Shown here: positions 4,762 through 23,700 of the stretch, piece by piece
Layout: each line of letters starts with the position of its first letter
Position numbering within the stretch: position 1 is the first letter of the stretch
Sequence record: MZ475898.1
Strand: one strand, 5' to 3'
Length of the DNA stretch: 64,000 bases
Position numbers and translations under genes: made by a program
Notes under the pieces: generated by a model
Databases searched by the model: none
Told to the model about the DNA's origin: nothing
What the model saw: the letters and a program-made list of their open reading frames with translations, nothing else

Positions 4762-5809
4762 CACACGGAAGCTGTCACGCATCGGTAAGATGATCGACGC
4801 TGCACTTGACGTTAAGATTCAAGAGAAGCGTTGGCCAAAGAAGCGTGTTAGTCCGTCAATGTTCCCTATCTGTCCGATTCAGGAAACTGCCAAGCTCATC
4901 TATCAGAAACACAACAACGCAATGACGGGTGAGTCTGGTACGCTGCTGAACATCTTTGCGAAAGCAGGTACGGGGATGCACGAGGCGATTCAGAATGCTC
5001 TGGGTCATAGTGGTCAGATGGTAGGCCACTGGAAGTGCACCAACGAAAAGTGTGAGGAGTACCCGAAGACTAAAGGCAAGATGGTCGATGGCAAATACAA
5101 GAAGGGCAAGTACACGCGCACTAAAAGCACGAACAACCGCTGCCCTTGTTGTGATCAGCCTATGGCCTATGCTGAACTCAAGGTGCTGTACAAAACTCTC
5201 AAGGGCTATGTCGATGGACTTGTCGATAACCTTGACGGCACGTACAGCCTGATCGATTTAAAGTCAACGATGATCACGAAAGCAGAGGACGGCACATTCT
5301 TTGTCAAGTACCATCGCTTCCAGATTGCAACCTATGCCTATCTGCTCAAGAAGCGCTATGGATATAACATCGTTGACTACACTCTGGTCTATGTTCCACG
5401 CGACAACCCTAAGAAGTTTGTCGAGAAGACCTTTGTGTTTGACGAAGAAGAAGCAAAACGCGCCAAAGACTTTATGATGGTGCAGATACGCGCTTGGGAT
5501 GCTGCGGTAAAATCGGCTGCTACTGGTGACCTGATGCCTGCTATCAAACGCAAGCCATGCAAGAGCGCCGAGTATTATTGGGATGAGTTTCATGGCTACG
5601 ACACTTGTCCGTTTGTAGATCATTGCTTTATTCAATCACACATGATCGACTTCATGAAGAAGTTAGAACAACGAATCATGGCTAACCCCGAACTGACGTA
5701 CACGGAAATCATTACGACAGGTCGGAAAACTCAACAACAAGGATTGCTGCCGGACAAGAAACCGAAGTCAGGTCGTCCGAAGCATATCGTAAAAACATTT
5801 GAGCTATGA
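4724..5809 (+). CDS. Cas4/RecB-like PD-(D/E)XK exonuclease
   Basis: SPSMFPIC, GTGMH, GYVDGL, LIDLKS, QIATY motifs and C-terminal Cys cluster; the start may be ATG 4790. Confidence 0.85.
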   Translation: MRSLANVPARVNDTRKLSRIGKMIDAALDVKIQEKRWPKKRVSPSMFPICPIQETAKLIYQKHNNAMTGESGTLLNIFAKAGTGMHEAIQNALGHSGQMVGHWKCTNEKCEEYPKTKGKMVDGKYKKGKYTRTKSTNNRCPCCDQPMAYAELKVLYKTLKGYVDGLVDNLDGTYSLIDLKSTMITKAEDGTFFVKYHRFQIATYAYLLKKRYGYNIVDYTLVYVPRDNPKKFVEKTFVFDEEEAKRAKDFMMVQIRAWDAAVKSAATGDLMPAIKRKPCKSAEYYWDEFHGYDTCPFVDHCFIQSHMIDFMKKLEQRIMANPELTYTEIITTGRKTQQQGLLPDKKPKSGRPKHIVKTFEL

Positions 5810-6216
5810 GCATCGAAAGAGACTATGAACGTTCTGCGCGAAGACTTAAGGAGTCTGTCCGGCGCATGGAACAACTCGGTTACGTTGTTCCCCACTGCGT
5901 TGTTTTAGTTCTGGCCAAGCTGCGGCCACCCAAAGAGGTGGTGTCGAGAAAGTACCTCGTTATTCTGATGTTGTTCAGTCAGACGTGTGAGACGCTGGGT
6001 GCTACCTTGACTATGCGTGAGCAGCTTGTGGTTAAACTGACTATCTTAGGCCGTAAGCATCCAACGCCAGAGATTACGCGCAAGCAACAGCGCATCGATC
6101 AGCTGGTAATATCGCAAGACAAGATCATTGAGAGTAACCTCGACCTGCTTGCGTATCGTTCGGAGATACTGCTGGCAATTCTCAGTGGTGAAGATCCAAA
6201 ATCACGATACATTTGA
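5806..6216 (+). CDS. Hypothetical protein
   Basis: ATGA start/stop overlap. Confidence 0.7.
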   Translation: MSIERDYERSARRLKESVRRMEQLGYVVPHCVVLVLAKLRPPKEVVSRKYLVILMLFSQTCETLGATLTMREQLVVKLTILGRKHPTPEITRKQQRIDQLVISQDKIIESNLDLLAYRSEILLAILSGEDPKSRYI

Positions 6217-6224
6217 GGTAATAT

Positions 6225-6689
6225 ATGACCATCGTTTATATCAGCCTGAGTCAAACGTCTTCGGATAAGAACCGAGACCGTGTCTCAAGCCCTGAGTCAA
6301 ACACTGGACGTGTTGACGTGTCTGAATACGCTTCTCTTGAGAAGAAATTGCGCCTCACAGAAGAAGCCAAGGACAAAGAGAAACTTGCACAGAAAGCTGG
6401 TGGCGGGGATTCTGTAAAGAATAAGAAAGCCAAGCCTAAAGCAGATGATGCAGGAGGAGATGATGATGCCACGGATGATGACGCAAGTTTCGACGACTTC
6501 GATACTGGAGATGACGACGATGATGCAGATTCCGACGCTTCGAACGGAAAGAAATCTAACAAAGCCAAGGGCGGCAAAGACAAGTCAGAAGAAACTGACG
6601 GCGGAGAACCCTCAAGTGAAGATGGGGATGATTCTGCTGAAGGAGATGATGACGGCTCCGACGACGACTTTGAAGACGAAGACGCCTGA
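6225..6689 (+). CDS. Low-complexity acidic/Lys-rich protein
   Basis: GAGG RBS; D/G/K-rich C-terminal two thirds. Confidence 0.75.
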   Translation: MTIVYISLSQTSSDKNRDRVSSPESNTGRVDVSEYASLEKKLRLTEEAKDKEKLAQKAGGGDSVKNKKAKPKADDAGGDDDATDDDASFDDFDTGDDDDDADSDASNGKKSNKAKGGKDKSEETDGGEPSSEDGDDSAEGDDDGSDDDFEDEDA

Positions 6690-6705: not shown

Positions 6706-7164
6706 ATGCGTGACATACTGATCGCTATTCAGTATATGTGTGTCAAGCGCATGGTCTTCCCGATTGTCACTGCCCGCATTGAGCAGAAGAATGGTTTCTT
6801 GGTAATGCACGCCATGCGTTTCAATGTCAGTCCCAAGAAATTCTTCGAAGCCATTAACGAGCGCAACGGTCAGATTAATTGTGTCTGGCTGCTGCGTGCC
6901 TTTACTCGTACTGCAATCAGTTATGGCCTCAAGCCTGTGATCGTCGAGAAGCTGAATGAGTACCAAGCGTTCAGCTCTCGTTTCTTTGATCACTCGGATG
7001 TAGACCTGACGTATCGTCGTCAGTACGATTACCGTGAACTGGCAATTCTGGCAGAGCATCCCAAACCTCGAATTTATACGCTGAATGGAGTTGATTACGA
7101 TGGCGTACAAATCCCAAGCAAAGAAACCCAAGAAGTCGAAAGCCGCGAAAGAAGCGGAAGTTAG
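6706..7164 (+). CDS. Hypothetical protein
   Basis: Likely start MRDILI with GAGGA upstream; the tracked 6445 extension is a shadow of the previous gene. Confidence 0.65.
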   Translation: MRDILIAIQYMCVKRMVFPIVTARIEQKNGFLVMHAMRFNVSPKKFFEAINERNGQINCVWLLRAFTRTAISYGLKPVIVEKLNEYQAFSSRFFDHSDVDLTYRRQYDYRELAILAEHPKPRIYTLNGVDYDGVQIPSKETQEVESRERSGS

Positions 7165-7756
7165 ACAGAAAGCGCACAAGCAAGCGCGTTCGGGTAAGCT
7201 CGGTAAAGCAGTAAAAACAATGAGTGCGGCGTCTGCAAAAAGTCGTCGTATGACCAAAGGCGAGAAGCGTGCTGTAATGCTTACGCCATTCAAAGCACAG
7301 GTTGTTCCCCAGCCTCCTAAAACCCCTCTGATGGATAAAGGTCTGTCGCTGAATGCTCTCATCAAGTCAACACCACGACTGATGAAAGAGAATGCGATGG
7401 AGTGTTATGTGAACTCAGTCAAGCGCGGCAAGACACCGAAAGGTTTGCCTTTCATTCAAGCTAACGTTAGACACAAAGACCCACTGCGTCCTAACAAGAC
7501 CGTGCGTATTCATAAGCCGATGATTGTTGGCCTTGATGATCCTTACAAGCCGATTTCAAAGCAGAAGCGCGTGCTGGTCAGTTGTCCGTGTGAGAACTTT
7601 GTGTTCATGTGGGAATACGCTGATGCCGAACACGGCGCTGCGCGTATCATCTACGGTAACGGCGAACCGCCTGACTTCACTAACCCCGGTCGTGCTCCAG
7701 GTCTGTGCAAACACCTGATGGCTTTAGCTGATCAAGTAAAACTGCACGGAGACTAA
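7100..7756 (+). CDS. SWIM-type zinc-finger protein with basic N-terminus
   Basis: VSCPCENF...GLCKHL (CxC...CxH); GGAG RBS before MAYKS. Confidence 0.7.
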   Translation: MAYKSQAKKPKKSKAAKEAEVRQKAHKQARSGKLGKAVKTMSAASAKSRRMTKGEKRAVMLTPFKAQVVPQPPKTPLMDKGLSLNALIKSTPRLMKENAMECYVNSVKRGKTPKGLPFIQANVRHKDPLRPNKTVRIHKPMIVGLDDPYKPISKQKRVLVSCPCENFVFMWEYADAEHGAARIIYGNGEPPDFTNPGRAPGLCKHLMALADQVKLHGD

Positions 7757-7758
7757 GT

Positions 7759-8292
7759 TTGGATATTTTCACCTCTGATACCCACTACGCATCACAGCGA
7801 ACTCTGGAGTTTAGTCGTCGTCCATTTGCGAACGTATCTGAAATGGATAGAACAATGCTGGACCGTTGCAATGCTGTAGCAACGCGTGAAGACACGCTAT
7901 ACCATGTTGGCGACTTCGGTGCTTACGAAATGGTGAAGTACATCAATGCGCCTGTCATTCTGATTTGCGGTAACTACGAAATCAATGACATGCACAAACA
8001 GTTCAACTCGGACTTTGATGCGTTTCGTGATCACCTACGTCGTCTTGGATTCAAAGACGTTATCCGTGATAGTCTGGAGGTTGGGGACATGCACCTCAAT
8101 CATTATCCTACTAAACGTAGCCGAACGAAGTTCAGCCTGTTCGGTCACATTCACGGTTTGCAGATGGTCAAACGCGGAGCACTAAATGTCGGCGTTGACT
8201 GTCACCACTATGCGCCAGTAGATGCTGGTCGCCTTGCGTTCTTCCGTAACGCTATCGAAACGCATTACGACGAAGACGTGTTCGGACCTTAA
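7759..8292 (+). CDS. Calcineurin-like metallophosphoesterase
   Basis: SDTH, HVGDF, GNYE, HYP, GHIH, NVGVD motifs; TTG start. Confidence 0.88.
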   Translation: MDIFTSDTHYASQRTLEFSRRPFANVSEMDRTMLDRCNAVATREDTLYHVGDFGAYEMVKYINAPVILICGNYEINDMHKQFNSDFDAFRDHLRRLGFKDVIRDSLEVGDMHLNHYPTKRSRTKFSLFGHIHGLQMVKRGALNVGVDCHHYAPVDAGRLAFFRNAIETHYDEDVFGP

Positions 8293-13697: not shown

Positions 13698-16199
13698 ATG
13701 GCAAAAGAGAAGAAGGCCAAAGCAAGCAAGAAGGCGAAAGCTGTTGCTTCTGATGACATTGGCGGGACCGTAGTAGAACTGTTTAGTCTGGGTAGCTACA
13801 TGGACGACGTCCTCGATGCTATCGAAAAGAAGACGAAAGTTAGTTCTGCTGATGCTGCCCGACATGCTCCTCGTATCTCGACCGGTGTGCTTGCTCTCGA
13901 CATGTATCTGGATGGTGGTATCGTGCCTGGCGGCTGGTACACGTTCAGCGGCGGTGAGCAATCATGTAAGTCAACCATGACCATGAGTATCATGGCCTCT
14001 CTTATTCGTCTCAAGTACAGCGGCATTAGCGTTGTGTTTGACTACGAAGGTTCTACCGATGCCGACTACGTTGCTGGTCAGCTCAAAACATTCGGCGTTA
14101 AAGTCGATCCGAAAACTATCTTCGGTGTGCGTGATGAAGAAGGCGGCTGGATCATCAAGCCTACCATTCGCTACTACGCGCCTGACAACGGTGAGCGCTT
14201 CTTCGATTATATGTCGATGCTGCGTCGTCGCCTGCCTGACAAGATCGTTGAGAAAGACGGTTCAGCTTACTACCTCTTCGAGAACACCAAAGAGAACTCG
14301 AAGAAGCTGGCAGGCAAGTACGATAAGAAGTGGTTCAGTCGTAACAACCAGTTCAAAGTTCCTGCGCCAGATGGCCACATGCAGGCTGCTGTTATCGTTG
14401 ACTCCTATCCGGCAATGCTGCCTGATCAGGTCGATGACGACGACGGTTCAAAAGCAATGGCTCTGCAAGCGCGTATGTTCTCCGATGGCATCAAACGTTT
14501 CCGTGGCGGTATGCGCCGTAAGATGATGACTATCGTGGGCGTTAACCAGTTGCGCCAGAAGCCTGCTGTAATGTTCGGCAGCCCTGAATATGAGCCGGGC
14601 GGGGACGCTCTCAAGTTCTATTGCTTCGCTGATGACACGCGCATTCGTACCGACCACGGTGTGTTGACTGCGCCTAAGATTAAAGCGTTGCTGGACGAAG
14701 GCAAAGAAGTTTGCGTTGAATCGTTCGAAGGCTTCCAGAAGATTAACGGTGCGTGGAAAGTTGAAGACGCTCCTTATCCGATTGAAGTCAATGCTGGTGG
14801 GCATGTGTATATCGGCAGTGCTGAGCATCGCCAGTTCACCTTCATGCATGACACAACCGCAGAAGGTATGCGTGTACTTCGTCCTGAGTGGAACACGCTT
14901 AGCCAGCTGGCGCAGTACCCTTCTGCGGAAGGTCAGTATGCTGCGATTCGTCTTGCGTCTGTCGAAGAACTCAAGCAGAACACGCCTGATCAATTCGATG
15001 CATCAAGCAAGAACATCGAGCTGGTGTTGTCTAACTGCGGTCCTGAGAAGCGTGATATTAATATCCTCTCTCATGACGGTACAACGTACACGATGCCTGC
15101 TGTGCTGATCGATGCCGTTGGTCCTTACGATCACGTTGAAGACTTCGCGCATTACATTCAGGACTTCCTGAACATCGGTATCTATGCGTATGCAGACAAC
15201 TCCGGTATCTGGATTCCTGGTCTGGTCGAAGCTGACCTGCACAACGCTATTGCACGCGATGCAGACTCTGGTTATCAGGGTGTTGACTTCTACGCTACCT
15301 CACGTCAGATCAGCTACCAGATGATGGCAGTTATCTCTGACGTGTTCCCAGAGCTGACCCGCTTCGTTCTGGACTTCAACGCTAATCACGCGGAAGAGCA
15401 GGAAGAGCAAGTTTATCTGGCGCCTGGCTTTGACATAGCCGAAGCTATGGACGGCATTCTGCACAAAGAGATCAGCGGCTACGACGACCAGTACGATCTG
15501 CTGATGCAGCAACTGGCCTATGTCGAAGACTGGTTCAGTGTTGATGACCGTCTGCTGCCTGTACCGTTTACGCTACGTGCGCTTGACAAGCAAGTTGAGT
15601 TCTGGGATGTTAACGTCGATGAAACTTCCGTCGTTATTACCAACAACTTCGTTAGTCATAACAGTGACGTTCGCGTTCGTCTGGCTTCTCGTGCTGTGCC
15701 TGAAGGCTGGCCGAAACTTAAAGACGCGCCTGGCGTTGTCGGTGAGAAGTCTGTTTCTGTTGAAGGCGGTACTGACCGCTATCGCTTCATTGCAGCCAAG
15801 ACCATCAAGAACAAGATGGGCGGTATCCCGAACCAGCAGACGTGGTTACGCCTGTGGGAAGCTGACGGTAATGGTGAAGCACGCGGCTTTGACCCAGTGT
15901 TCGATACATGGCACTACGTCAAAACTCTCGGCCTCGTCAACGGCACGCGCAAGTCGTTCAAACTGAAAGCGCCATGCCCTGTAGCATCCGAAGTTAAGAT
16001 GGATTGGGATGACTTCCGTACGCTGATCAACGGTAACAAAGAACAGATTGTTAGCGTGTGCAAAAAGCTGAAAGTCAAACCTGTATCTCTGCGTCTGTGG
16101 GCGTTCAAGTTCGTGCAGTCTCAGAAAGGCAAAGATATGTTGAAAGCGTCGATCAGTAAGTCCGTTAAGAACGTTAACGACGACGAAGACGACGATTAA
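13698..16199 (+). CDS. recA: RecA/UvsX recombinase interrupted by an intein
   Basis: ISTGVLALDMYLDGGIVPG, Walker A variant GGEQSCKST, Walker B VIVDS, VNQLRQK, MFGSPEYEPGGDALKFY...SDVRVRL, KTIKNK; AGGA RBS at MAKEK. Confidence 0.92.
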   Translation: MAKEKKAKASKKAKAVASDDIGGTVVELFSLGSYMDDVLDAIEKKTKVSSADAARHAPRISTGVLALDMYLDGGIVPGGWYTFSGGEQSCKSTMTMSIMASLIRLKYSGISVVFDYEGSTDADYVAGQLKTFGVKVDPKTIFGVRDEEGGWIIKPTIRYYAPDNGERFFDYMSMLRRRLPDKIVEKDGSAYYLFENTKENSKKLAGKYDKKWFSRNNQFKVPAPDGHMQAAVIVDSYPAMLPDQVDDDDGSKAMALQARMFSDGIKRFRGGMRRKMMTIVGVNQLRQKPAVMFGSPEYEPGGDALKFYCFADDTRIRTDHGVLTAPKIKALLDEGKEVCVESFEGFQKINGAWKVEDAPYPIEVNAGGHVYIGSAEHRQFTFMHDTTAEGMRVLRPEWNTLSQLAQYPSAEGQYAAIRLASVEELKQNTPDQFDASSKNIELVLSNCGPEKRDINILSHDGTTYTMPAVLIDAVGPYDHVEDFAHYIQDFLNIGIYAYADNSGIWIPGLVEADLHNAIARDADSGYQGVDFYATSRQISYQMMAVISDVFPELTRFVLDFNANHAEEQEEQVYLAPGFDIAEAMDGILHKEISGYDDQYDLLMQQLAYVEDWFSVDDRLLPVPFTLRALDKQVEFWDVNVDETSVVITNNFVSHNSDVRVRLASRAVPEGWPKLKDAPGVVGEKSVSVEGGTDRYRFIAAKTIKNKMGGIPNQQTWLRLWEADGNGEARGFDPVFDTWHYVKTLGLVNGTRKSFKLKAPCPVASEVKMDWDDFRTLINGNKEQIVSVCKKLKVKPVSLRLWAFKFVQSQKGKDMLKASISKSVKNVNDDEDDD
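14622..15662 (+). mobile_element. Intein (347 aa) with a degenerate LAGLIDADG-like core
   Basis: Begins CFADDTRIRTDHG, block B SAEH, ends VSHN followed by +1 Ser; removing it restores ALKFY|SDVRVRL. Confidence 0.92.
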
Positions 16200-16243
16200 T
16201 TAACTCGCGGTCCTTCGGGGCCGCCCTCTATCTGGAGAAAGAA

Positions 16244-16627
16244 ATGCGTACTCTGATTCATACCGCAGACGTAACCAATCTGTCTGTGCTGGAACTGGAA
16301 GAAGGCTCGGTAGCAAAGCCTGTTACTCCAAATCTGATTTCTGATCTCAAAGAGTTGCTGTCACGCGAAGACCTGAGTCAGAACATTCGCCACGTTGTAT
16401 TCATCTCTGCTGATCAGGTCGGTGTGTTTACCGAACCTGAGATGATCAACTACTTCGATCCAATCGAACAGGTGTCTGAAATCAACGCAGGCAATATCGG
16501 TACTGTGCTGGCTATGCAGGTTATTCGTGTCGATGACAAGACTAATCTGATCGCAGTGGCTGGTGTCACTGATGTGGAAGAAGGCGTTACTATCAACGAG
16601 TTCAACGCATCGCCTGTAAATCTGTAA
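16244..16627 (+). CDS. Hypothetical protein
   Basis: GGAG RBS. Confidence 0.75.
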   Translation: MRTLIHTADVTNLSVLELEEGSVAKPVTPNLISDLKELLSREDLSQNIRHVVFISADQVGVFTEPEMINYFDPIEQVSEINAGNIGTVLAMQVIRVDDKTNLIAVAGVTDVEEGVTINEFNASPVNL

Positions 16628-16697
16628 ATAAAACAAGTGAGGGCAATCGTGTCCTCACTTAACTCACTCTGATAGGGCATTGACCCAGGAGATAAAC

Positions 16698-17420
16698 ATG
16701 ACAATCAAATTTGTCGAAGTACCGAACATTAGTATGTTCGAGGGTCTGGTGCATGGCGCCAACCGACACGCACAAAACACCAACATCGGCGGCAAGGCGC
16801 GTTATGCATTCTACGTGGATGTGACAGAAGCTGCGGCAGAAGCTGCACTGTATTCAATGTTGCGCAAGAAGGCACACGCAGATGTTAGAGCTGTGGGCTA
16901 CTCTGTTTCTCATACTGTTCGAGGTATGACTCAACCCAAAGAGATTCCTGTTTTCTTGTCGGACAATTTGTCGCACATATCATTGGATTCTTTGAAACAA
17001 AATTTATGTGAGTTGCTTCGTGCGCTGTGTCGTTCAGCCGCCAGCTCGGATAGCAATATCATTCTGTATTACCAAAAGGACATGGCTTTCATCAAAAGCA
17101 AAATGTTCGATTGGGTTCTTGAAGGCAAGTTAAGCAGGCCTTCAAAAGTAAACAGCGAACTATATGTTCGTTCCTCAAACATTGATCTTAACGTCCTTCT
17201 TAACATCGTTAGAGATCACGATTATATCGGACACTTTGCATCTAACATACCACAAGAGATTACAATAGGCTCTGATGCGAGTGCCATAGATGCAGTCAAG
17301 TTATGTGACACAGCCGACGTACTGGCTGCTCAAGGTCGCAAAGTGCATCTGTGCAATGACATTTACCGCAAAGCGTTGTCTATCTCCTTTGCCGACGGTA
17401 TTCCGCGTAATCAACTGTAA
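16698..17420 (+). CDS. Hypothetical protein
   Basis: AGGAG RBS before MTIKF. Confidence 0.7.
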   Translation: MTIKFVEVPNISMFEGLVHGANRHAQNTNIGGKARYAFYVDVTEAAAEAALYSMLRKKAHADVRAVGYSVSHTVRGMTQPKEIPVFLSDNLSHISLDSLKQNLCELLRALCRSAASSDSNIILYYQKDMAFIKSKMFDWVLEGKLSRPSKVNSELYVRSSNIDLNVLLNIVRDHDYIGHFASNIPQEITIGSDASAIDAVKLCDTADVLAAQGRKVHLCNDIYRKALSISFADGIPRNQL

Positions 17421-17465
17421 ACCAAACACATTGCTGTGTGTAGTCTTTGGCCAAACTTAGGCTCG

Positions 17466-17495
17466 GGAGTCCAGGACGGGCTCCCATTTTTATTT
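17466..17495 (+). terminator. Intrinsic terminator
   Basis: GGGAGTCC...GGGCTCCC followed by ATTTTTATTT. Confidence 0.75.
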
Positions 17496-17508
17496 CGGAG
17501 ACAGAACA

Positions 17509-18573
17509 GTGACTGACATTAGAAGCAAAACAGCCTACGAATATCTGCACGACACGTATCTTGAAAACAATTTCTTTGTTGGCGTTCCTCGATCTAAACT
17601 CACTGCAAAGTTTCAAGAGTACCTGAAGACAACTAACGGTAGGCTGCATCGTCATGGTCTTCCTCTCGCTGACTTTATGACGTGGGCCAACATGCGTCCT
17701 GAGATCAAAAAGGGCGAACAGCAATTTGATGCCGTCATGAGACTGCACAAACTTTCTTTTGATGCAGCCGCCGTGTACACACAATTCGTATGGTCGTTTA
17801 CCAAAGGTGTGTTCAAGATCGATCAAGAGATATGGAAACATCTCGCAGAAGGTGAGCCACCCAAGATACTGCCTTCTGATACGCTCAAGAGACTGCCTAA
17901 CTGGTCACAGTGGTTAGATACATCGCTGAGAATGGTTCGCCACGATAGCGCCAGTGACACGCTATTTGCTTTGACCACTGAGGGCTTCTGGTCAACGTAT
18001 CTGTGCTACGATCATCAAAACAGAACGCACATGTTCCTCGTAGCGCCTACCGTTATGCAGATAGGCAAAGATAGTTTCATCGCAACCACTCTGGTTATGT
18101 TTGACATAACAAAAGACCATGAGATGGAAGACAACATGGATTGGCAAATCACCGCCACATCAACTGACGGTCAAACTTCCGTACGCTTTACTAAAGAGCA
18201 TGAAACGTACGGCAAGATACTTGACGGTTTGGTTAGTGCTTGGATTGACTCTGCTGTCAATGCATTGTTGTTTGTCGCTTCATCCGTTGATAACGTTTAT
18301 AAAGGAGGTGTAAAGGGCATCGTCCCACGCAAACAAGGTAAGACGTTCAAAGTTCTACCGATACGTGACGTGCGTGTATGGCATGTAGGTTCAGAGTTGC
18401 TTAACGAGATACGCCAGTATGAATCTGATGTAGCCTCAGAGAGTTCTCAGAATCGTCGTGCTCACATTCGTCGTGGTCATTATCATAACTACTGGTATGG
18501 CCCACGTGATGGTGAACGTGTTCTAAAAGCCAAATGGCTTCCACCGTGTGTCGTTCGAGGCACCGCAGAGTAA
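17509..18573 (+). CDS. AcrVA2/FinQ-family protein
   Basis: WSFTKGVFKIDQEI, LPNWSQWLD, GFWSTY, VWHVGSELLNEIRQYES and RRAHIRRGHYHNYWYG match AcrVA2 blocks as recalled; GTG start with GGAG. Confidence 0.75.
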   Translation: MTDIRSKTAYEYLHDTYLENNFFVGVPRSKLTAKFQEYLKTTNGRLHRHGLPLADFMTWANMRPEIKKGEQQFDAVMRLHKLSFDAAAVYTQFVWSFTKGVFKIDQEIWKHLAEGEPPKILPSDTLKRLPNWSQWLDTSLRMVRHDSASDTLFALTTEGFWSTYLCYDHQNRTHMFLVAPTVMQIGKDSFIATTLVMFDITKDHEMEDNMDWQITATSTDGQTSVRFTKEHETYGKILDGLVSAWIDSAVNALLFVASSVDNVYKGGVKGIVPRKQGKTFKVLPIRDVRVWHVGSELLNEIRQYESDVASESSQNRRAHIRRGHYHNYWYGPRDGERVLKAKWLPPCVVRGTAE

Positions 18574-18622
18574 TCACAATCAACCTTATCTTCCACAAAG
18601 GCGTTTAGCCTAGGAGAATCTT

Positions 18623-19381
18623 ATGTCAAGAGTACAAACGTTGTTCATCCCTGAAGTTGAACGTTTTGAAGCGTATGTTAAGTCGTTGCTGCACATGGCA
18701 CGCACGCTAGATAACAGCGGTCGTCAATATGATCGCACGAAACATGTTGTCGTCGTTGGCTCAACAACTCGCACAGTCGAAGCCTACGTCAAAACAACAA
18801 TCGGCTCTAACACAGTTCCAGATGGCGTTTTCTGCCTCGGACTGAACCAAGCGCCTGACCTCTATAAGAAATATGACTTCGGCTCGGCTCATGTTGTACT
18901 GATGTTCGATCTGATGTATACGTCGGAGAGCGCAATCCAATCACTGGCCCACAGACTATTTGATATTATCCTGACGCTCAAGCAGCGACCAGAAGACAGA
19001 GAACTGAAAAACCTTCCGATACATATCGTTGGCCAGAACTGGAAGGTGTGGGATGCTATGATGGAGTCCGGTGCAGGCAACGCAGCAAACTACGAATGCT
19101 ATTCTAAGGGATTGCAGTTTGCGCCCAATCAAACTTTCGAAACAGCTTCATGCATCACGTTTGACCAGCTACTCACGCAGGACCCGAACACTTACGCCAA
19201 GCACGACATTTCGATTGGCCGAGAGTTCACCGTGATTGATCATGCTACGCTGATTCAAAAACTCCATAACATCAAATGGGTGTTGCAGTCGGGCCAGACA
19301 CAACACAAACTCATCCTCGACCACGCGTTTCAGCGCATTTTGTTCGAGCAATATCTCTGCTATGAGTTTCAGGGTCTTTAA
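18623..19381 (+). CDS. Hypothetical protein
   Basis: AGGAG RBS. Confidence 0.75.
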   Translation: MSRVQTLFIPEVERFEAYVKSLLHMARTLDNSGRQYDRTKHVVVVGSTTRTVEAYVKTTIGSNTVPDGVFCLGLNQAPDLYKKYDFGSAHVVLMFDLMYTSESAIQSLAHRLFDIILTLKQRPEDRELKNLPIHIVGQNWKVWDAMMESGAGNAANYECYSKGLQFAPNQTFETASCITFDQLLTQDPNTYAKHDISIGREFTVIDHATLIQKLHNIKWVLQSGQTQHKLILDHAFQRILFEQYLCYEFQGL

Positions 19382-19455
19382 GAATAATCTTAGTCCGCTA
19401 ACTAATTTAAAAACGTTGGCAAGTAGTGCTGACGTCTAGTTATCGGAGACATAAC

Positions 19456-19719
19456 GTGTACGAACGTAGCCTCGTGCGATTGAAGTACCACGCCAGAGCA
19501 CACCTCTGGTACAATAATACAGAACACGCTTGCAGTGAGCGGAAGGCTACTAATGTGCAATGTGAACAATTCTTGGAAGCAACCAAGAACTGTCGCTCTG
19601 TGCAGGAGTCGCCTAGTGTTGTTTCTTTCTACTCAGGAGCCGAGCTTGTTGGTCAAGCAATATGGCAGCATGATGCAGACAGTGACAGCACACTTCAATT
19701 CCGGCTTCTACTTGCGTAA
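19456..19719 (+). CDS. Hypothetical protein
   Basis: GGAG RBS before GTG at 19456. Confidence 0.5.
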   Translation: MYERSLVRLKYHARAHLWYNNTEHACSERKATNVQCEQFLEATKNCRSVQESPSVVSFYSGAELVGQAIWQHDADSDSTLQFRLLLA

Positions 19720-19783
19720 CATCCTAAAGGGCTTTCAGATACCTCTGGCGGCCCTTTATCATTTCAATACACGGAGAAAGCCA

Positions 19784-20050
19784 ATGTCTGTTCAGATTCA
19801 ACTGTCAGAGAAAAACCTCGACGATATTATGCAGCACTCCACCAGCCGCATCAGCCTGTCTGAGTTGAATGCGCGTCTGGCGCAAGATGAAATCATCATG
19901 CAGAACGTGCTGGTGGAACGCCCTGTAGGCGCCGGTGTGCCTATCACTGTCGTGCGTGATATTGTTGATCGCTATCTGGAGCTGATTCGCAATCCAGGTC
20001 CGATTGACGGTCAATGGCAGCCGCAAGAATACGCTATCGTGCAATACTGA
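19784..20050 (+). CDS. Hypothetical protein
   Basis: GGAG RBS before MSVQIQ; followed by a hairpin. Confidence 0.7.
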   Translation: MSVQIQLSEKNLDDIMQHSTSRISLSELNARLAQDEIIMQNVLVERPVGAGVPITVVRDIVDRYLELIRNPGPIDGQWQPQEYAIVQY

Positions 20051-20124
20051 TCTCATGGGTGCCTTAGGGCGCCCATATTCGTTTATATGCTAATTTCTAC
20101 CTACATTCAACTAGGAGAGACAGC

Positions 20125-20784
20125 ATGAAAATATTCGTTTCGCTGTCGGCCCCACAAAAACAAAAAGAACCGCCGATTGTAACTGAATCTGATCAAAAGA
20201 ATCCTCGCGTAAACGATAACAGCAAACTCGGTCAAGTGTTTGATGTGTTCGTGCTCCAGCAAATGTCCTATCTCGATATGAAAGAGATTCGTGGCTCTGC
20301 TGGTCCAAAGTACGCGCAGGTTATTGCCGACTGGCTCAACAGCCAACGCAGTATCGACAATAAGTTCCGTGTGTCTAAGCGCAGTAAGATCTCTATTGCT
20401 GTCAAGAACACCCAACAGCTTGCCGCTCGCTATACGGACATTTACCTGTTGAGTCCTGAGAGCAATAAAGAGCGTTCGTGGTTGCTTAAAGGCGAAGGCC
20501 CACAAGGCAACAACAAGACGATTGAGATTGGTCGTAATCTCTTATTAGACGTCCTATATGCTTCTGCTCTGACGTTGCTTGGTGCACACCTCGTAACAGA
20601 AGAATGGCCAGGCAACAGCACGTATGATCAAGTGTTGTTTGAAATGGACAAGCGAAGTAAACGTGGTAAAAGGATTGGTAAGCGCTACCCACGCATTGCC
20701 AAAGAAAATGAAAACACACTAATCACGATGATGCAGGACGGGTTGTCTATTGCAGAAATCACCGATTGGGTTCTGAAACAGTAA
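20125..20784 (+). CDS. Hypothetical protein
   Basis: AGGAG RBS. Confidence 0.75.
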   Translation: MKIFVSLSAPQKQKEPPIVTESDQKNPRVNDNSKLGQVFDVFVLQQMSYLDMKEIRGSAGPKYAQVIADWLNSQRSIDNKFRVSKRSKISIAVKNTQQLAARYTDIYLLSPESNKERSWLLKGEGPQGNNKTIEIGRNLLLDVLYASALTLLGAHLVTEEWPGNSTYDQVLFEMDKRSKRGKRIGKRYPRIAKENENTLITMMQDGLSIAEITDWVLKQ

Positions 20785-21861: not shown

Positions 21862-23700
21862 ATGATTGAAGTAAACTGTTTCGCAGATTTACGCACTACC
21901 GCTCCAGCAAAGGCTGGCGACATGGCGTTACTGAAACGTTACTATGACAAAGACAGTTCGTTTCGTGGGGGCGGCTACTTCATCGGCTTTCCGCAGACAA
22001 AAGATCTGCCTGCAGATGATGGTGGTATTACGGCAGTAGATGCAAACAAAAGTTTCTTCTGGAAGCGTGTTGTGAATGACCCAGAAGAGATTAACCTGTT
22101 CCACTTCGGTGGTCGCTGCGACGGCAAGACAGATGACAGTGACGCGTTCCTGCGTAACTTCATGTGGACGTGTAAGTCTGCTGACGGCAACGACACTATT
22201 GGTGTTCGCTTCCCGACAGGCACAACGTTGATCAACCCTATCGATCTTACTCACTTGGGTGAGATACCTGTGTTCGCTATCTATGGTGACACACGTTCTG
22301 ATAAGGGCTGGCGTCCTCGTGTCAAGCTGATCAGTAACCAAGGCGAAGCTACTGTATTCAAGTTCAACGCTCGCCGCACTATTGTTCGTGGCCTGAACTG
22401 GAACGGTCAGTGCTATCCTGTGAAGGACGGCAAGAAGGTAGACGTGTCCACGATCGTGGGTGCTGTCATGCCTGAGCAGCGTTCAAACAATCAGATCTTC
22501 CTTGAGAACATCTGTACTATGGGTCAGTACATTGGCGTACAGTGCTTCCGTGCTGAGAGCAACGGCGGATCTGCATTGAAGTTCCAAGACACCATCGATA
22601 CTTCTATCACAGAGATCTATGGCAGTAAGAGCTACGGTGCTGTGATTGAGGCCAAGTGGTCGAACACAGTGCAGGCAGGTTGGAACCACTCTACTGCTGT
22701 GCGCTTAGAGAACGGTAACTTCCAGTACGGCTACGGCCCTGCTGTGTTAGACATGCCGCGTATGACTCAGGCGTTCATGAAGAACGTCTGGATTGAACAC
22801 ACGCGCTTCCCAGGTAATATGAATGATGGTCAATGGGTGCTTGAAGGTAACTCTATTGAGAGTTCTGACAACCCACTCAATCTGGCCAACACTCGTTGCG
22901 TGATCAATGGCTACTACTTCCAAGGCGTTGGGACAATGAACTTGGAACGTGCGTCAAGCCCTGACAACTGGCTGAGTGGCTACGAGCGCGGCAACATTCG
23001 TACTGAAACATACGGTATCATCATGACCGATGCTTGCTTCCGCGCAGGCTATTACACGGGTTATAAGATTACCAACAATACAGATCAGGACAAATGGTTC
23101 TATCTGGGCAGCTATTCATTCCCGAAAGTGAATCAAGTGTGGCAGATTGAACTTCTGGGTACTGCACCAAACGTTGTACCGAACACGAAGCTGCAACAGC
23201 CTACACAGATGGATGGCATGGGTCGTCGTGTTATCACAATGCAACGCTGTATCTCACCGCAGAAGAAAGTGTATGCTGATATGCACATGGAAGGAACGGA
23301 CGCAATCGCCGATGTTGTGTACCAGCGTCTGTGGGAAGACTACGGCAAGGTGTGGGTTAAGCTGAAAGCCAACAGTGGCGATACTATCTTCAACCTGACC
23401 ACCACTGGTCCGACTCGTTTCGAAGCAGGTGTTTGTACGTTGTTCAGCGACGGTCCAATTGAATGCGTGGATCCCGTTCTGACCGAGATGACCACCAGTG
23501 TCGAAAAGAATCAGAAGGACTATGCGCGACCTCAGGCTCGTTTCAGTTTGCACAATGGCCTTGCAGGTGTAGGCGCAAACGAGCAGGGTCTCATCACTAT
23601 TCAAACCAAAGACGCTACAGCACCGAAAGATACCACTAAGCCTGCTGGCTATGTGAGTGTCAATATCAACGGTGTTGATCGTCTCTTGCCTTACTACTAA
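21862..23700 (+). CDS. AmsF/WceF-like tailspike-fold (beta-helix) protein; candidate EPS-binding/depolymerase
   Basis: N-terminal YY...GGG-x-F, DDGG, WKRV, NLFHFG...DGKTDD head motifs; Asn/Gly-rich body; C-terminal GYVSVNINGVDRLLPYY. Confidence 0.7.
   Translation: MIEVNCFADLRTTAPAKAGDMALLKRYYDKDSSFRGGGYFIGFPQTKDLPADDGGITAVDANKSFFWKRVVNDPEEINLFHFGGRCDGKTDDSDAFLRNFMWTCKSADGNDTIGVRFPTGTTLINPIDLTHLGEIPVFAIYGDTRSDKGWRPRVKLISNQGEATVFKFNARRTIVRGLNWNGQCYPVKDGKKVDVSTIVGAVMPEQRSNNQIFLENICTMGQYIGVQCFRAESNGGSALKFQDTIDTSITEIYGSKSYGAVIEAKWSNTVQAGWNHSTAVRLENGNFQYGYGPAVLDMPRMTQAFMKNVWIEHTRFPGNMNDGQWVLEGNSIESSDNPLNLANTRCVINGYYFQGVGTMNLERASSPDNWLSGYERGNIRTETYGIIMTDACFRAGYYTGYKITNNTDQDKWFYLGSYSFPKVNQVWQIELLGTAPNVVPNTKLQQPTQMDGMGRRVITMQRCISPQKKVYADMHMEGTDAIADVVYQRLWEDYGKVWVKLKANSGDTIFNLTTTGPTRFEAGVCTLFSDGPIECVDPVLTEMTTSVEKNQKDYARPQARFSLHNGLAGVGANEQGLITIQTKDATAPKDTTKPAGYVSVNINGVDRLLPYY

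Follow-up and report, generated by a model that had tools for sequence, protein, structure and literature searches.

A divergent AcrVA2/FinQ-family gene and its exchanged alleles at a fixed slot downstream of uvsX in Erwinia jumbo phages

We found that g248, a gene of Erwinia phage pEa_SNUABM_25, encodes a protein of the AcrVA2/FinQ family. What is new here is that genes of this family occupy a fixed slot downstream of uvsX in a clade of Erwinia phages, that divergent alleles are exchanged at this slot, and that the exchange is accompanied by a modular pattern of conservation. The phage was isolated on Erwinia amylovora and has a 263 kb genome, from which we examined a 64-kb window of record MZ475898.1 (window position 1 corresponds approximately to record position 186,001; all coordinates below are window positions unless stated otherwise). 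The open reading frame (ORF) of g248 at 17509-18573 (+) is intact, starts with GTG and encodes 354 amino acids. It is identical to the deposited coding sequence QYW05604.1, which carries the database label 'hypothetical protein', and coincides exactly with the gene placed there by an earlier reading of the DNA letters (the sequence-only reading). By analogy with AcrVA2, we favour, with a probability of about 0.4, the interpretation that g248 encodes a functional AcrVA2/FinQ-type nascent-chain mRNA silencer, whose target would be allele-specific and different from Cas12a, and would preferably be a host protein made during infection.

The g248 protein belongs to the AcrVA2/FinQ family

A phmmer search against 177,635 PDB sequences gave AcrVA2 (7ci1_A) as the sole match (E 2.2e-13, residues 87-349 of the query to residues 72-316 of the chain), and a profile built from nine relatives found AcrVA2 in the PDB at E 2e-13. 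When the protein was compared with plasmids by tblastn, 582 records matched, 557 of them conjugative, and the enterobacterial plasmid matches labelled 'finQ: protein FinQ' were obtained at E 3e-8 to 7e-9, with 23% identity over residues 95-349 of the query. PHROG 6160, to which no function is assigned, matches the protein at E 1e-64. The Pfam family PF26125 'AcrVA2-like' is precomputed on all eight database relatives, including a 99%-identical cluster and an 82%-identical protein. Our Pfam and NCBIfam scans of the g248 protein itself returned no family; the empty Pfam result is due to the Pfam set scanned, which did not contain the PF26125 model. A PADLOC scan of the same protein produced a chance-level match only. 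The sequence-only reading had assigned the gene to the AcrVA2/FinQ family and had suggested profile searches as a check. The matches that name AcrVA2, FinQ and PF26125 bear out this assignment, and both AcrVA2 and FinQ are matched significantly, at the E-values given above for the profile and for tblastn.

The AlphaFold2 model of the protein (predicted local distance difference test score, pLDDT, 81; predicted template modelling score, pTM, 0.80) is made up of three domains, of which the N-terminal one is helical, the middle one is a beta-sheet with a long helix, and the C-terminal one is small and of beta type. Foldseek comparison of this model with the PDB gave AcrVA2 (7ci2_A) as the sole significant match (E 4e-11, probability 1.0). 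A structural homologue was also found in BFVD, namely A0A223LH45 of Erwinia phage vB_EamM_RisingSun (Foldseek E 2e-13, template modelling (TM) score 0.52), whose UniProt name 'putative mycothiosynthase' is probably a misannotation.

AcrVA2 of a Moraxella bovoculi prophage (PDB 7CI1/7CI2) thus has in common with the g248 protein the homology over residues 87-349, the same three-domain layout (described for AcrVA2 in PMC10846135), a similar length (323 residues in the PDB chain versus 354) and the five residues that have been tested by mutation. On the other hand, the two proteins are only ~19-25% identical, and the first 86 residues of the g248 protein are unaligned by sequence. While AcrVA2 belongs to a prophage of a Cas12a host, g248 resides in a jumbo phage of 263 kb whose host is described with a type I-E CRISPR system, and no AcrVA1-like partner was recognised near g248. 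FinQ is found on IncI and F-like conjugative plasmids of E. coli, Salmonella and Shigella. It is ~23% identical to the g248 protein and shares the C-terminal HxR motif, but it is plasmid-borne and acts on F-plasmid transfer genes, whereas g248 is phage-borne. FinQ and AcrVA2, the former likewise with its C-terminal HxR motif, have been described as one family (Marino et al., bioRxiv 10.1101/2022.11.29.518452). The presence of FinQ in it indicates that the family has targets other than Cas12a. FinQ lowers the transfer-gene mRNA of a competitor plasmid, by a mechanism that was never settled (Marino et al.); in the older FinQ literature, the effect was read as Rho-independent termination within the tra operon. 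Marino et al. also drew an analogy with mammalian tubulin autoregulation, in which a nascent N-terminal peptide is recognised on the ribosome and mRNA decay follows. Tubulin autoregulation is eukaryotic and involves unrelated proteins, so that the likeness is one of analogy only.

Residues needed by AcrVA2 are retained and conservation is modular

Five ordered blocks resembling AcrVA2 had been pointed out in the sequence-only reading. We verified all five in the translation of the window and in the HMMER alignment, where they lie at residues 95-108, 129-132, 159-164, 291-304 and 319-324, each aligned with 7ci1_A. In AcrVA2, the W79A and D89A substitutions weaken activity, and H286A, R288A and H291A abolish mRNA downregulation (Marino et al.). 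All five of these residues are kept in the g248 protein according to the HMMER alignment. The equivalents of W79 and D89 are W95 and D105 (17791-17823, +); among the 158 family members used for the residue counts, the tryptophan is present in 151 and the aspartate in 110, with glutamate at the latter position in 21. The equivalents of H286, R288 and H291 form the motif H319-x-R321-x-x-H324 (18463-18480, +). H319 and H324 are each found in 157/158 members and R321 in 158/158, and all three are invariant in the clade alignment. Since every residue known to matter in AcrVA2 is retained, an mRNA-silencing role for g248 is plausible.

Conservation differs strongly between the domains. The N-terminal helical domain, delimited by the AlphaFold2 secondary structure (residues 1-98; 17509-17802, +), is variable and has the lowest conservation in the family; it may be the specificity region. 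The middle beta-sheet domain with its long helix (residues 99-270; 17803-18318, +) includes a highly variable segment at residues 166-232. The C-terminal beta domain (residues 271-354; 18319-18570, +) is the most conserved part and provides the best HMMER stretch to AcrVA2. Identity to the clade relatives is accordingly 43-70% over residues 271-354, 31-51% over residues 91-165, and 12-36% over residues 1-90 and 166-232. This modular conservation mirrors the relationship between AcrVA2 and FinQ, whose C-termini are alike and whose N-termini are different (Marino et al.). The C-terminal part of AcrVA2 associates with ribosomes and polysomes, and published work on AcrVA2 has it recruit a cellular enzyme, without cleaving mRNA itself (2026 editorial PMC13728456). 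By analogy, the C-terminal domain of the g248 protein would be a ribosome-docking and effector module.

AcrVA2-like genes occupy a fixed slot in the Erwinia phage clade

The g248 protein matched 92 phage records in tblastn searches. The same 48 Erwinia records appeared in the uvsX and the AcrVA2-like searches, each with one AcrVA2-like copy located 3-4 kb downstream of uvsX. These records cover Alexandravirus, Sasquatchvirus (Y3), Yoloswagvirus, Rivsvirus and the unclassified SNUABM_25 group. Beyond the nine records of the SNUABM_25 group, the tblastn identity to the query is 25-47%, and the same phages have 79-94% identity in the N-terminal part of UvsX. The SNUABM_25 allele class, which includes eight near-identical relatives, shows at most 49% identity to the other named phage proteins, and its nearest relative is a metagenomic protein with 82% identity. 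Remoter homologues are found in jumbo phages of Klebsiella, Salmonella, Serratia and Erwinia (RisingSun), and also in Moraxella phages. No AcrVA2-like match was obtained by tblastn for phages JA11, JA29 and JA33.

The other phage proteins covered by PHROG 6160 and PF26125 are of the same family and length class and carry the same C-terminal motif; all of them are annotated as hypothetical. Examples are those of Erwinia phages Yoloswag, Y3 and Alexandra, Dickeya phages AD1 and JA13, Klebsiella phage FBKp24 and Shewanella phage vB_SbaS_Y11 (ORF43). AcrVA2-like proteins were noted in huge phages in 2020 (Al-Shayeb et al., PMC7162821), and an AcrVA2 homologue has been described in a lytic phage of Shewanella (PMC10846135). 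Moreover, Marino et al. counted ~1,800 AcrVA2 orthologues, including some in megaphages and usually without Cas12a, and proposed other targets for them. The exhaustive profile search that we ran is consistent with a family of that size, with 2,446 clusters passing E <= 1e-3, of which 737 also pass E <= 1e-10. The family link of g248 is therefore real but already catalogued, as PF26125 covers the clade. The sequence-only reading went too far in presenting a non-Cas12a target in a phage as undescribed, since Marino et al. had proposed this, with megaphages included.

Whole alleles are exchanged at the slot

We compared the genes around the slot in pairwise identity matrices of ten phages. Between SNUABM_32 and SNUABM_1, identity is 98% for g243, 96% for UvsX and 80% for g246, but 30% for the AcrVA2-like protein. 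The SNUABM_32 allele is nearest to that of Y3, which belongs to another genus (55%), and then to the query (46%). The allele of SNUABM_3, another Alexandravirus, stands apart, with 29-36% identity to every other allele. There are at least five allele classes: class 1 with SNUABM_25, class 2 with Y3 and SNUABM_32, class 3 with Yoloswag and SNUABM_5, class 4 with SNUABM_3, and class 5 with Alexandra, AD1, SNUABM_1 and SNUABM_30. Identity between classes is ~27-42%, except for the first two, which are 46-49% identical to each other.

The DNA sequences locate the exchange. SNUABM_32 and SNUABM_1 are 90% identical up to 9 nucleotides before the start codon, have no detectable similarity over almost the entire AcrVA2-like ORF, and become similar again in its last ~40 nucleotides. 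The boundaries of the exchange are thus the start codon and the conserved C-terminal coding end. Rapid divergence in situ was considered as a source of the low identity and was dropped in favour of allele replacement, because the 90% DNA identity stops 9 nucleotides short of the start codon and no similarity is detectable within the ORF. In SNUABM_30, g249 resembles that of SNUABM_32 (92%), and the AcrVA2-like gene resembles that of SNUABM_1 (95%). The mosaic of g249 hence differs from that of the AcrVA2-like gene, indicating breakpoints between the two genes.

A clean single-gene swap is seen at a different locus in the Salmondvirus JA13, where an unrelated segment of 481 bp stands in JA33 in place of the AcrVA2-like gene, and the flanks are 98-99.8% identical. 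At 4851-6475 of the fetched locus, the JA13 gene overlaps by 4 nucleotides the start of a putative (p)ppGpp synthetase/hydrolase gene, which is also present in JA33 without the AcrVA2-like gene. Whole-allele exchange of this kind is as expected for a specificity determinant in conflict.

Selection, expression signals and a conserved upstream element

The ratio of non-synonymous to synonymous substitution rates (dN/dS) of g248 is 0.06 against pEa_SNUABM_34, 0.04 against pEa_SNUABM_21 and 0.11 against the 82%-identical metagenomic relative. These values indicate purifying selection on a working gene and rule out gene-wide positive selection. In the comparison with the 82%-identical relative, g248 is more conserved than g246, g247 and g249, which are 53-66% identical. 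The use of GTG as the start of g248 is supported by pEa_SNUABM_34 and one metagenomic relative, both of which have ATG at the same site. For two other phages, the starts annotated in the fetched loci look inconsistent with the clade, namely those of Dickeya phage AD1 (4965-5891, 308 amino acids) and Alexandra (6935-7987); in the alignment of the upstream element, the ATG common to the other phages lies upstream of the annotated start of AD1.

A ribosome-binding site, GGAG, can be read at 17497-17500 (+), 8 nucleotides before the start codon of g248, and is kept in close relatives. It is preceded by a terminator-like hairpin found in a consensus scan, with an 8 bp stem and a 5-nucleotide loop at 17465-17485 and a T-run extending to 17495 (17465-17495, +). 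The terminator and the separate ribosome-binding site named in the sequence-only reading are both real. The hairpin also folds in the predicted RNA structure, and its pairing is kept in relatives although the letters of the stem differ, with two pairs showing compensated changes. As only ~13 nucleotides separate the T-run from the start codon, a separate promoter for g248 would not fit between the hairpin and the gene. No terminator lies between g248 and g249, the next terminator-like site on the + strand in the consensus scan being at 20055; g249 is therefore probably co-transcribed with g248.

The hairpin is part of a composite element at 17425-17495 that comprises, in this order, a 20-nucleotide core, a small hairpin, the terminator-like hairpin and the T-run. 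The conserved noncoding core, which heads the slot (17425-17446, +), contains an ACACA / TGTGT inverted repeat plus 5 nucleotides. The 20-nucleotide core is invariant in nine phages in which the flanking proteins are 26-55% identical; it is conserved in sequence and shows no covariation. The composite element as a whole is better conserved than both flanking genes and stays at the slot across allele swaps, with or without g247. A 15-mer scan of IMG/VR for the motif gave mostly chance matches, with the exception of one contig (40-110) in which the same composite element stands before a g247-like gene. Rfam gave no match in the window from 16000 to 20500, the upstream element included. The core does not recur in the 64-kb window beyond chance, which speaks against a general phage promoter motif. 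It may be a promoter, an operator, a processing site or a recombination anchor.

Genes around the slot

Upstream of the slot are the replication and recombination genes g243 (sigma-70-like in relatives), g244 (SSB in relatives) and the gene of a UvsX/RecA-like recombinase (13698-16199). The recombinase has 833 amino acids, compared to ~500 positions of the profile, and includes an insert of 347 amino acids (~14622-15662). The first residue of the insert is Cys and its last two are His-Asn, with Ser coming next; it is intein-like by these end residues and has no Pfam and no PDB match. The uvsX genes of all clade relatives are similarly long.

Between the recombinase gene and the slot element lie g246 and g247 (16244-17420, +), which are fast-evolving, with 24-43% identity to the clade relatives. 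Of these, g247 (16698-17420) is missing in SNUABM_3 and SNUABM_30, where g246 directly precedes the slot element and the AcrVA2-like gene; its absence from these two Alexandraviruses indicates that g247 is an optional gene. Downstream of g248 is g249 (18623-19381, +), likewise fast-evolving. We found four homologues of g249, and its model (pLDDT 62) showed no significant fold match and no DNA-binding fold, with only a weak generic resemblance to alpha/beta nucleoside triphosphatases. None of g246, g247 and g249 had a match in Pfam, PHROG, PADLOC or the PDB. These three genes were ruled out as partners of AcrVA2-like genes, as they are absent beside the homologues in Dickeya phage JA13 and Klebsiella phage FBKp24. 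We also considered an acr-aca operon in which the inverted repeat would be the operator and g249 the regulator; the few homologues of g249, the low pLDDT and the lack of a fold match do not support it. The co-occurrence of the repeat and g249 may simply reflect phylogeny.

The ~400 nucleotides between g249 and g250 (19382-19783) have no annotated gene, only short and unconvincing ORFs, and no Rfam match. Further downstream, the gene at 21862-23700 is similar to exopolysaccharide depolymerases or tail spikes (PHROG 4250, E 2e-195). Homologues of this gene lie near the slot in Yoloswag and SNUABM_5 (78-80%) and, in part, in the DRR494324 contig (59%); the fetched loci of Alexandra, Y3 and AD1 showed none. 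This patchy occurrence indicates that the gene content downstream of the slot varies.

Possible targets of the g248 protein

According to the interpretation that we prefer, the C-terminal domain with the H-x-R-x-x-H motif would dock the g248 protein on translating ribosomes, and a particular nascent peptide would be bound there by the two variable domains, the N-terminal and the middle one. The mRNA in question would then be degraded by a ribonuclease of the host, so that the target protein would never be made. The target would be set by the variable domains and would differ between the exchanged allele classes. E. amylovora has been described with a type I-E CRISPR system plus an I-F remnant (PMC9004355), which makes Cas12a an unlikely target. 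A block of synthesis leaves the pre-existing protein in the cell; in a lytic infection, the target should therefore be a protein made during the infection. A host protein newly made in the long infection by a jumbo phage, for example an induced defence or stress function, would fit this best.

Several observations weigh against this interpretation. E. amylovora is genetically uniform, which is awkward to reconcile with a host protein as the target of at least five allele classes. The presence of the gene in 48/48 Erwinia clade records at one position is core-like and untypical of accessory anti-defence genes. The global TM-score to AcrVA2 in the Foldseek comparison is merely 0.44-0.49, and the domain arrangement may therefore differ from that of AcrVA2. 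Because protein already present persists, counter-defence in a lytic infection becomes less plausible, except against an induced target. The phage-borne homologues of the clade are known here from their sequences, from which no target can be named. Finally, family, defence-library, PDB and fold searches revealed no known acr or aca neighbour and no DNA-binding regulator adjoining g248. As the feature of acr loci that we looked for, other acr genes or an aca regulator, is absent here, the name 'anti-CRISPR' is unsuitable for g248, and the gene should rather be annotated as 'AcrVA2/FinQ-family protein, target unknown'.

As many alleles are exchanged among phages isolated on a single host species, the target is likely to be polymorphic, and this places a FinQ-like action on competitors close behind the action on a host protein. 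The same mechanism would then be aimed at rival elements, such as co-infecting or superinfecting phages or resident plasmids, and the slot would mediate phage competition. We regard this as a real contender, if still on the unlikely side. It agrees with the effect of FinQ on the transfer-gene mRNA of a competitor plasmid and with the predominance of conjugative plasmids (557/582) among the plasmid matches. Deeply divergent alleles that recombine among co-occurring phages suit a polymorphic target carried by phages better than one of a uniform host, and all proteins of an incoming competitor would be new, as would suit an action on newly made protein. However, we found no candidate target gene that covaries with the allele class, and the nearest polymorphic gene, g249, has another mosaic. 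It is also conceivable, but distinctly unlikely, that the fold has been kept with a different activity, the protein being a stoichiometric binder or inhibitor of a finished protein, or a factor that acts on transcription, as FinQ was first interpreted. AcrVA2 does bind mature Cas12a as well as an internal Cas12a peptide, the older FinQ literature invoked transcription termination, and both the low identity to AcrVA2 and the modest global TM-score leave room for such a change. Nevertheless, the binding of mature Cas12a by AcrVA2 is not inhibitory (Marino et al.), and no positions of the whole family are better conserved than the residues on which mRNA downregulation depends (157-158/158), which argues for a shared effector activity.

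A role in self-regulation or host takeover, with a conserved host housekeeping mRNA as the silenced target or, in a timing switch, the early mRNAs of the phage itself, would account for the core-like, fixed position beside the replication and recombination module in every member of the Erwinia clade, and for the conserved, regulatory-looking element upstream. If the target were conserved, the surface that recognises it should be conserved as well, but identity in the recognition domains is 12-36% and near-identical genomes swap entire alleles; in addition, JA11, JA29 and JA33 live without the gene. We thus consider this role improbable, and both it and a changed activity are less likely than a host or a competitor target. 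That g248 is a decaying or neutral relic is barely credible. Apart from the annotation as a mere 'hypothetical protein', which would suit a relic, every relative examined has an intact ORF, the dN/dS values are 0.04-0.11, the functional residues are invariant in the clade, and the expression signals are conserved.

A broader proposal, which we put forward as possible though doubtful, is that the slot is a hot-swappable specificity cassette. Each allele class would recognise another nascent peptide by means of its own variable domains on a shared C-terminal docking module, the targets would be polymorphic (defences induced by infection, or proteins of competing phages or plasmids), and the upstream element and the 3' coding end would serve as recombination anchors. 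If this is true, the lytic jumbo phages of this clade would carry a natural library of peptide-guided gene silencers that recombine.

The AcrVA2 work has raised the question of what the ~2,000 AcrVA2 homologues outside Cas12a hosts act on. While g248 alone gives no answer, the clade offers a clean natural comparison, with dozens of sequenced phages on one host species and whole-allele differences at the slot. Infection transcriptomes of pairs such as SNUABM_32 and SNUABM_1 could reveal the targets, and also how the variable domains encode peptide specificity.

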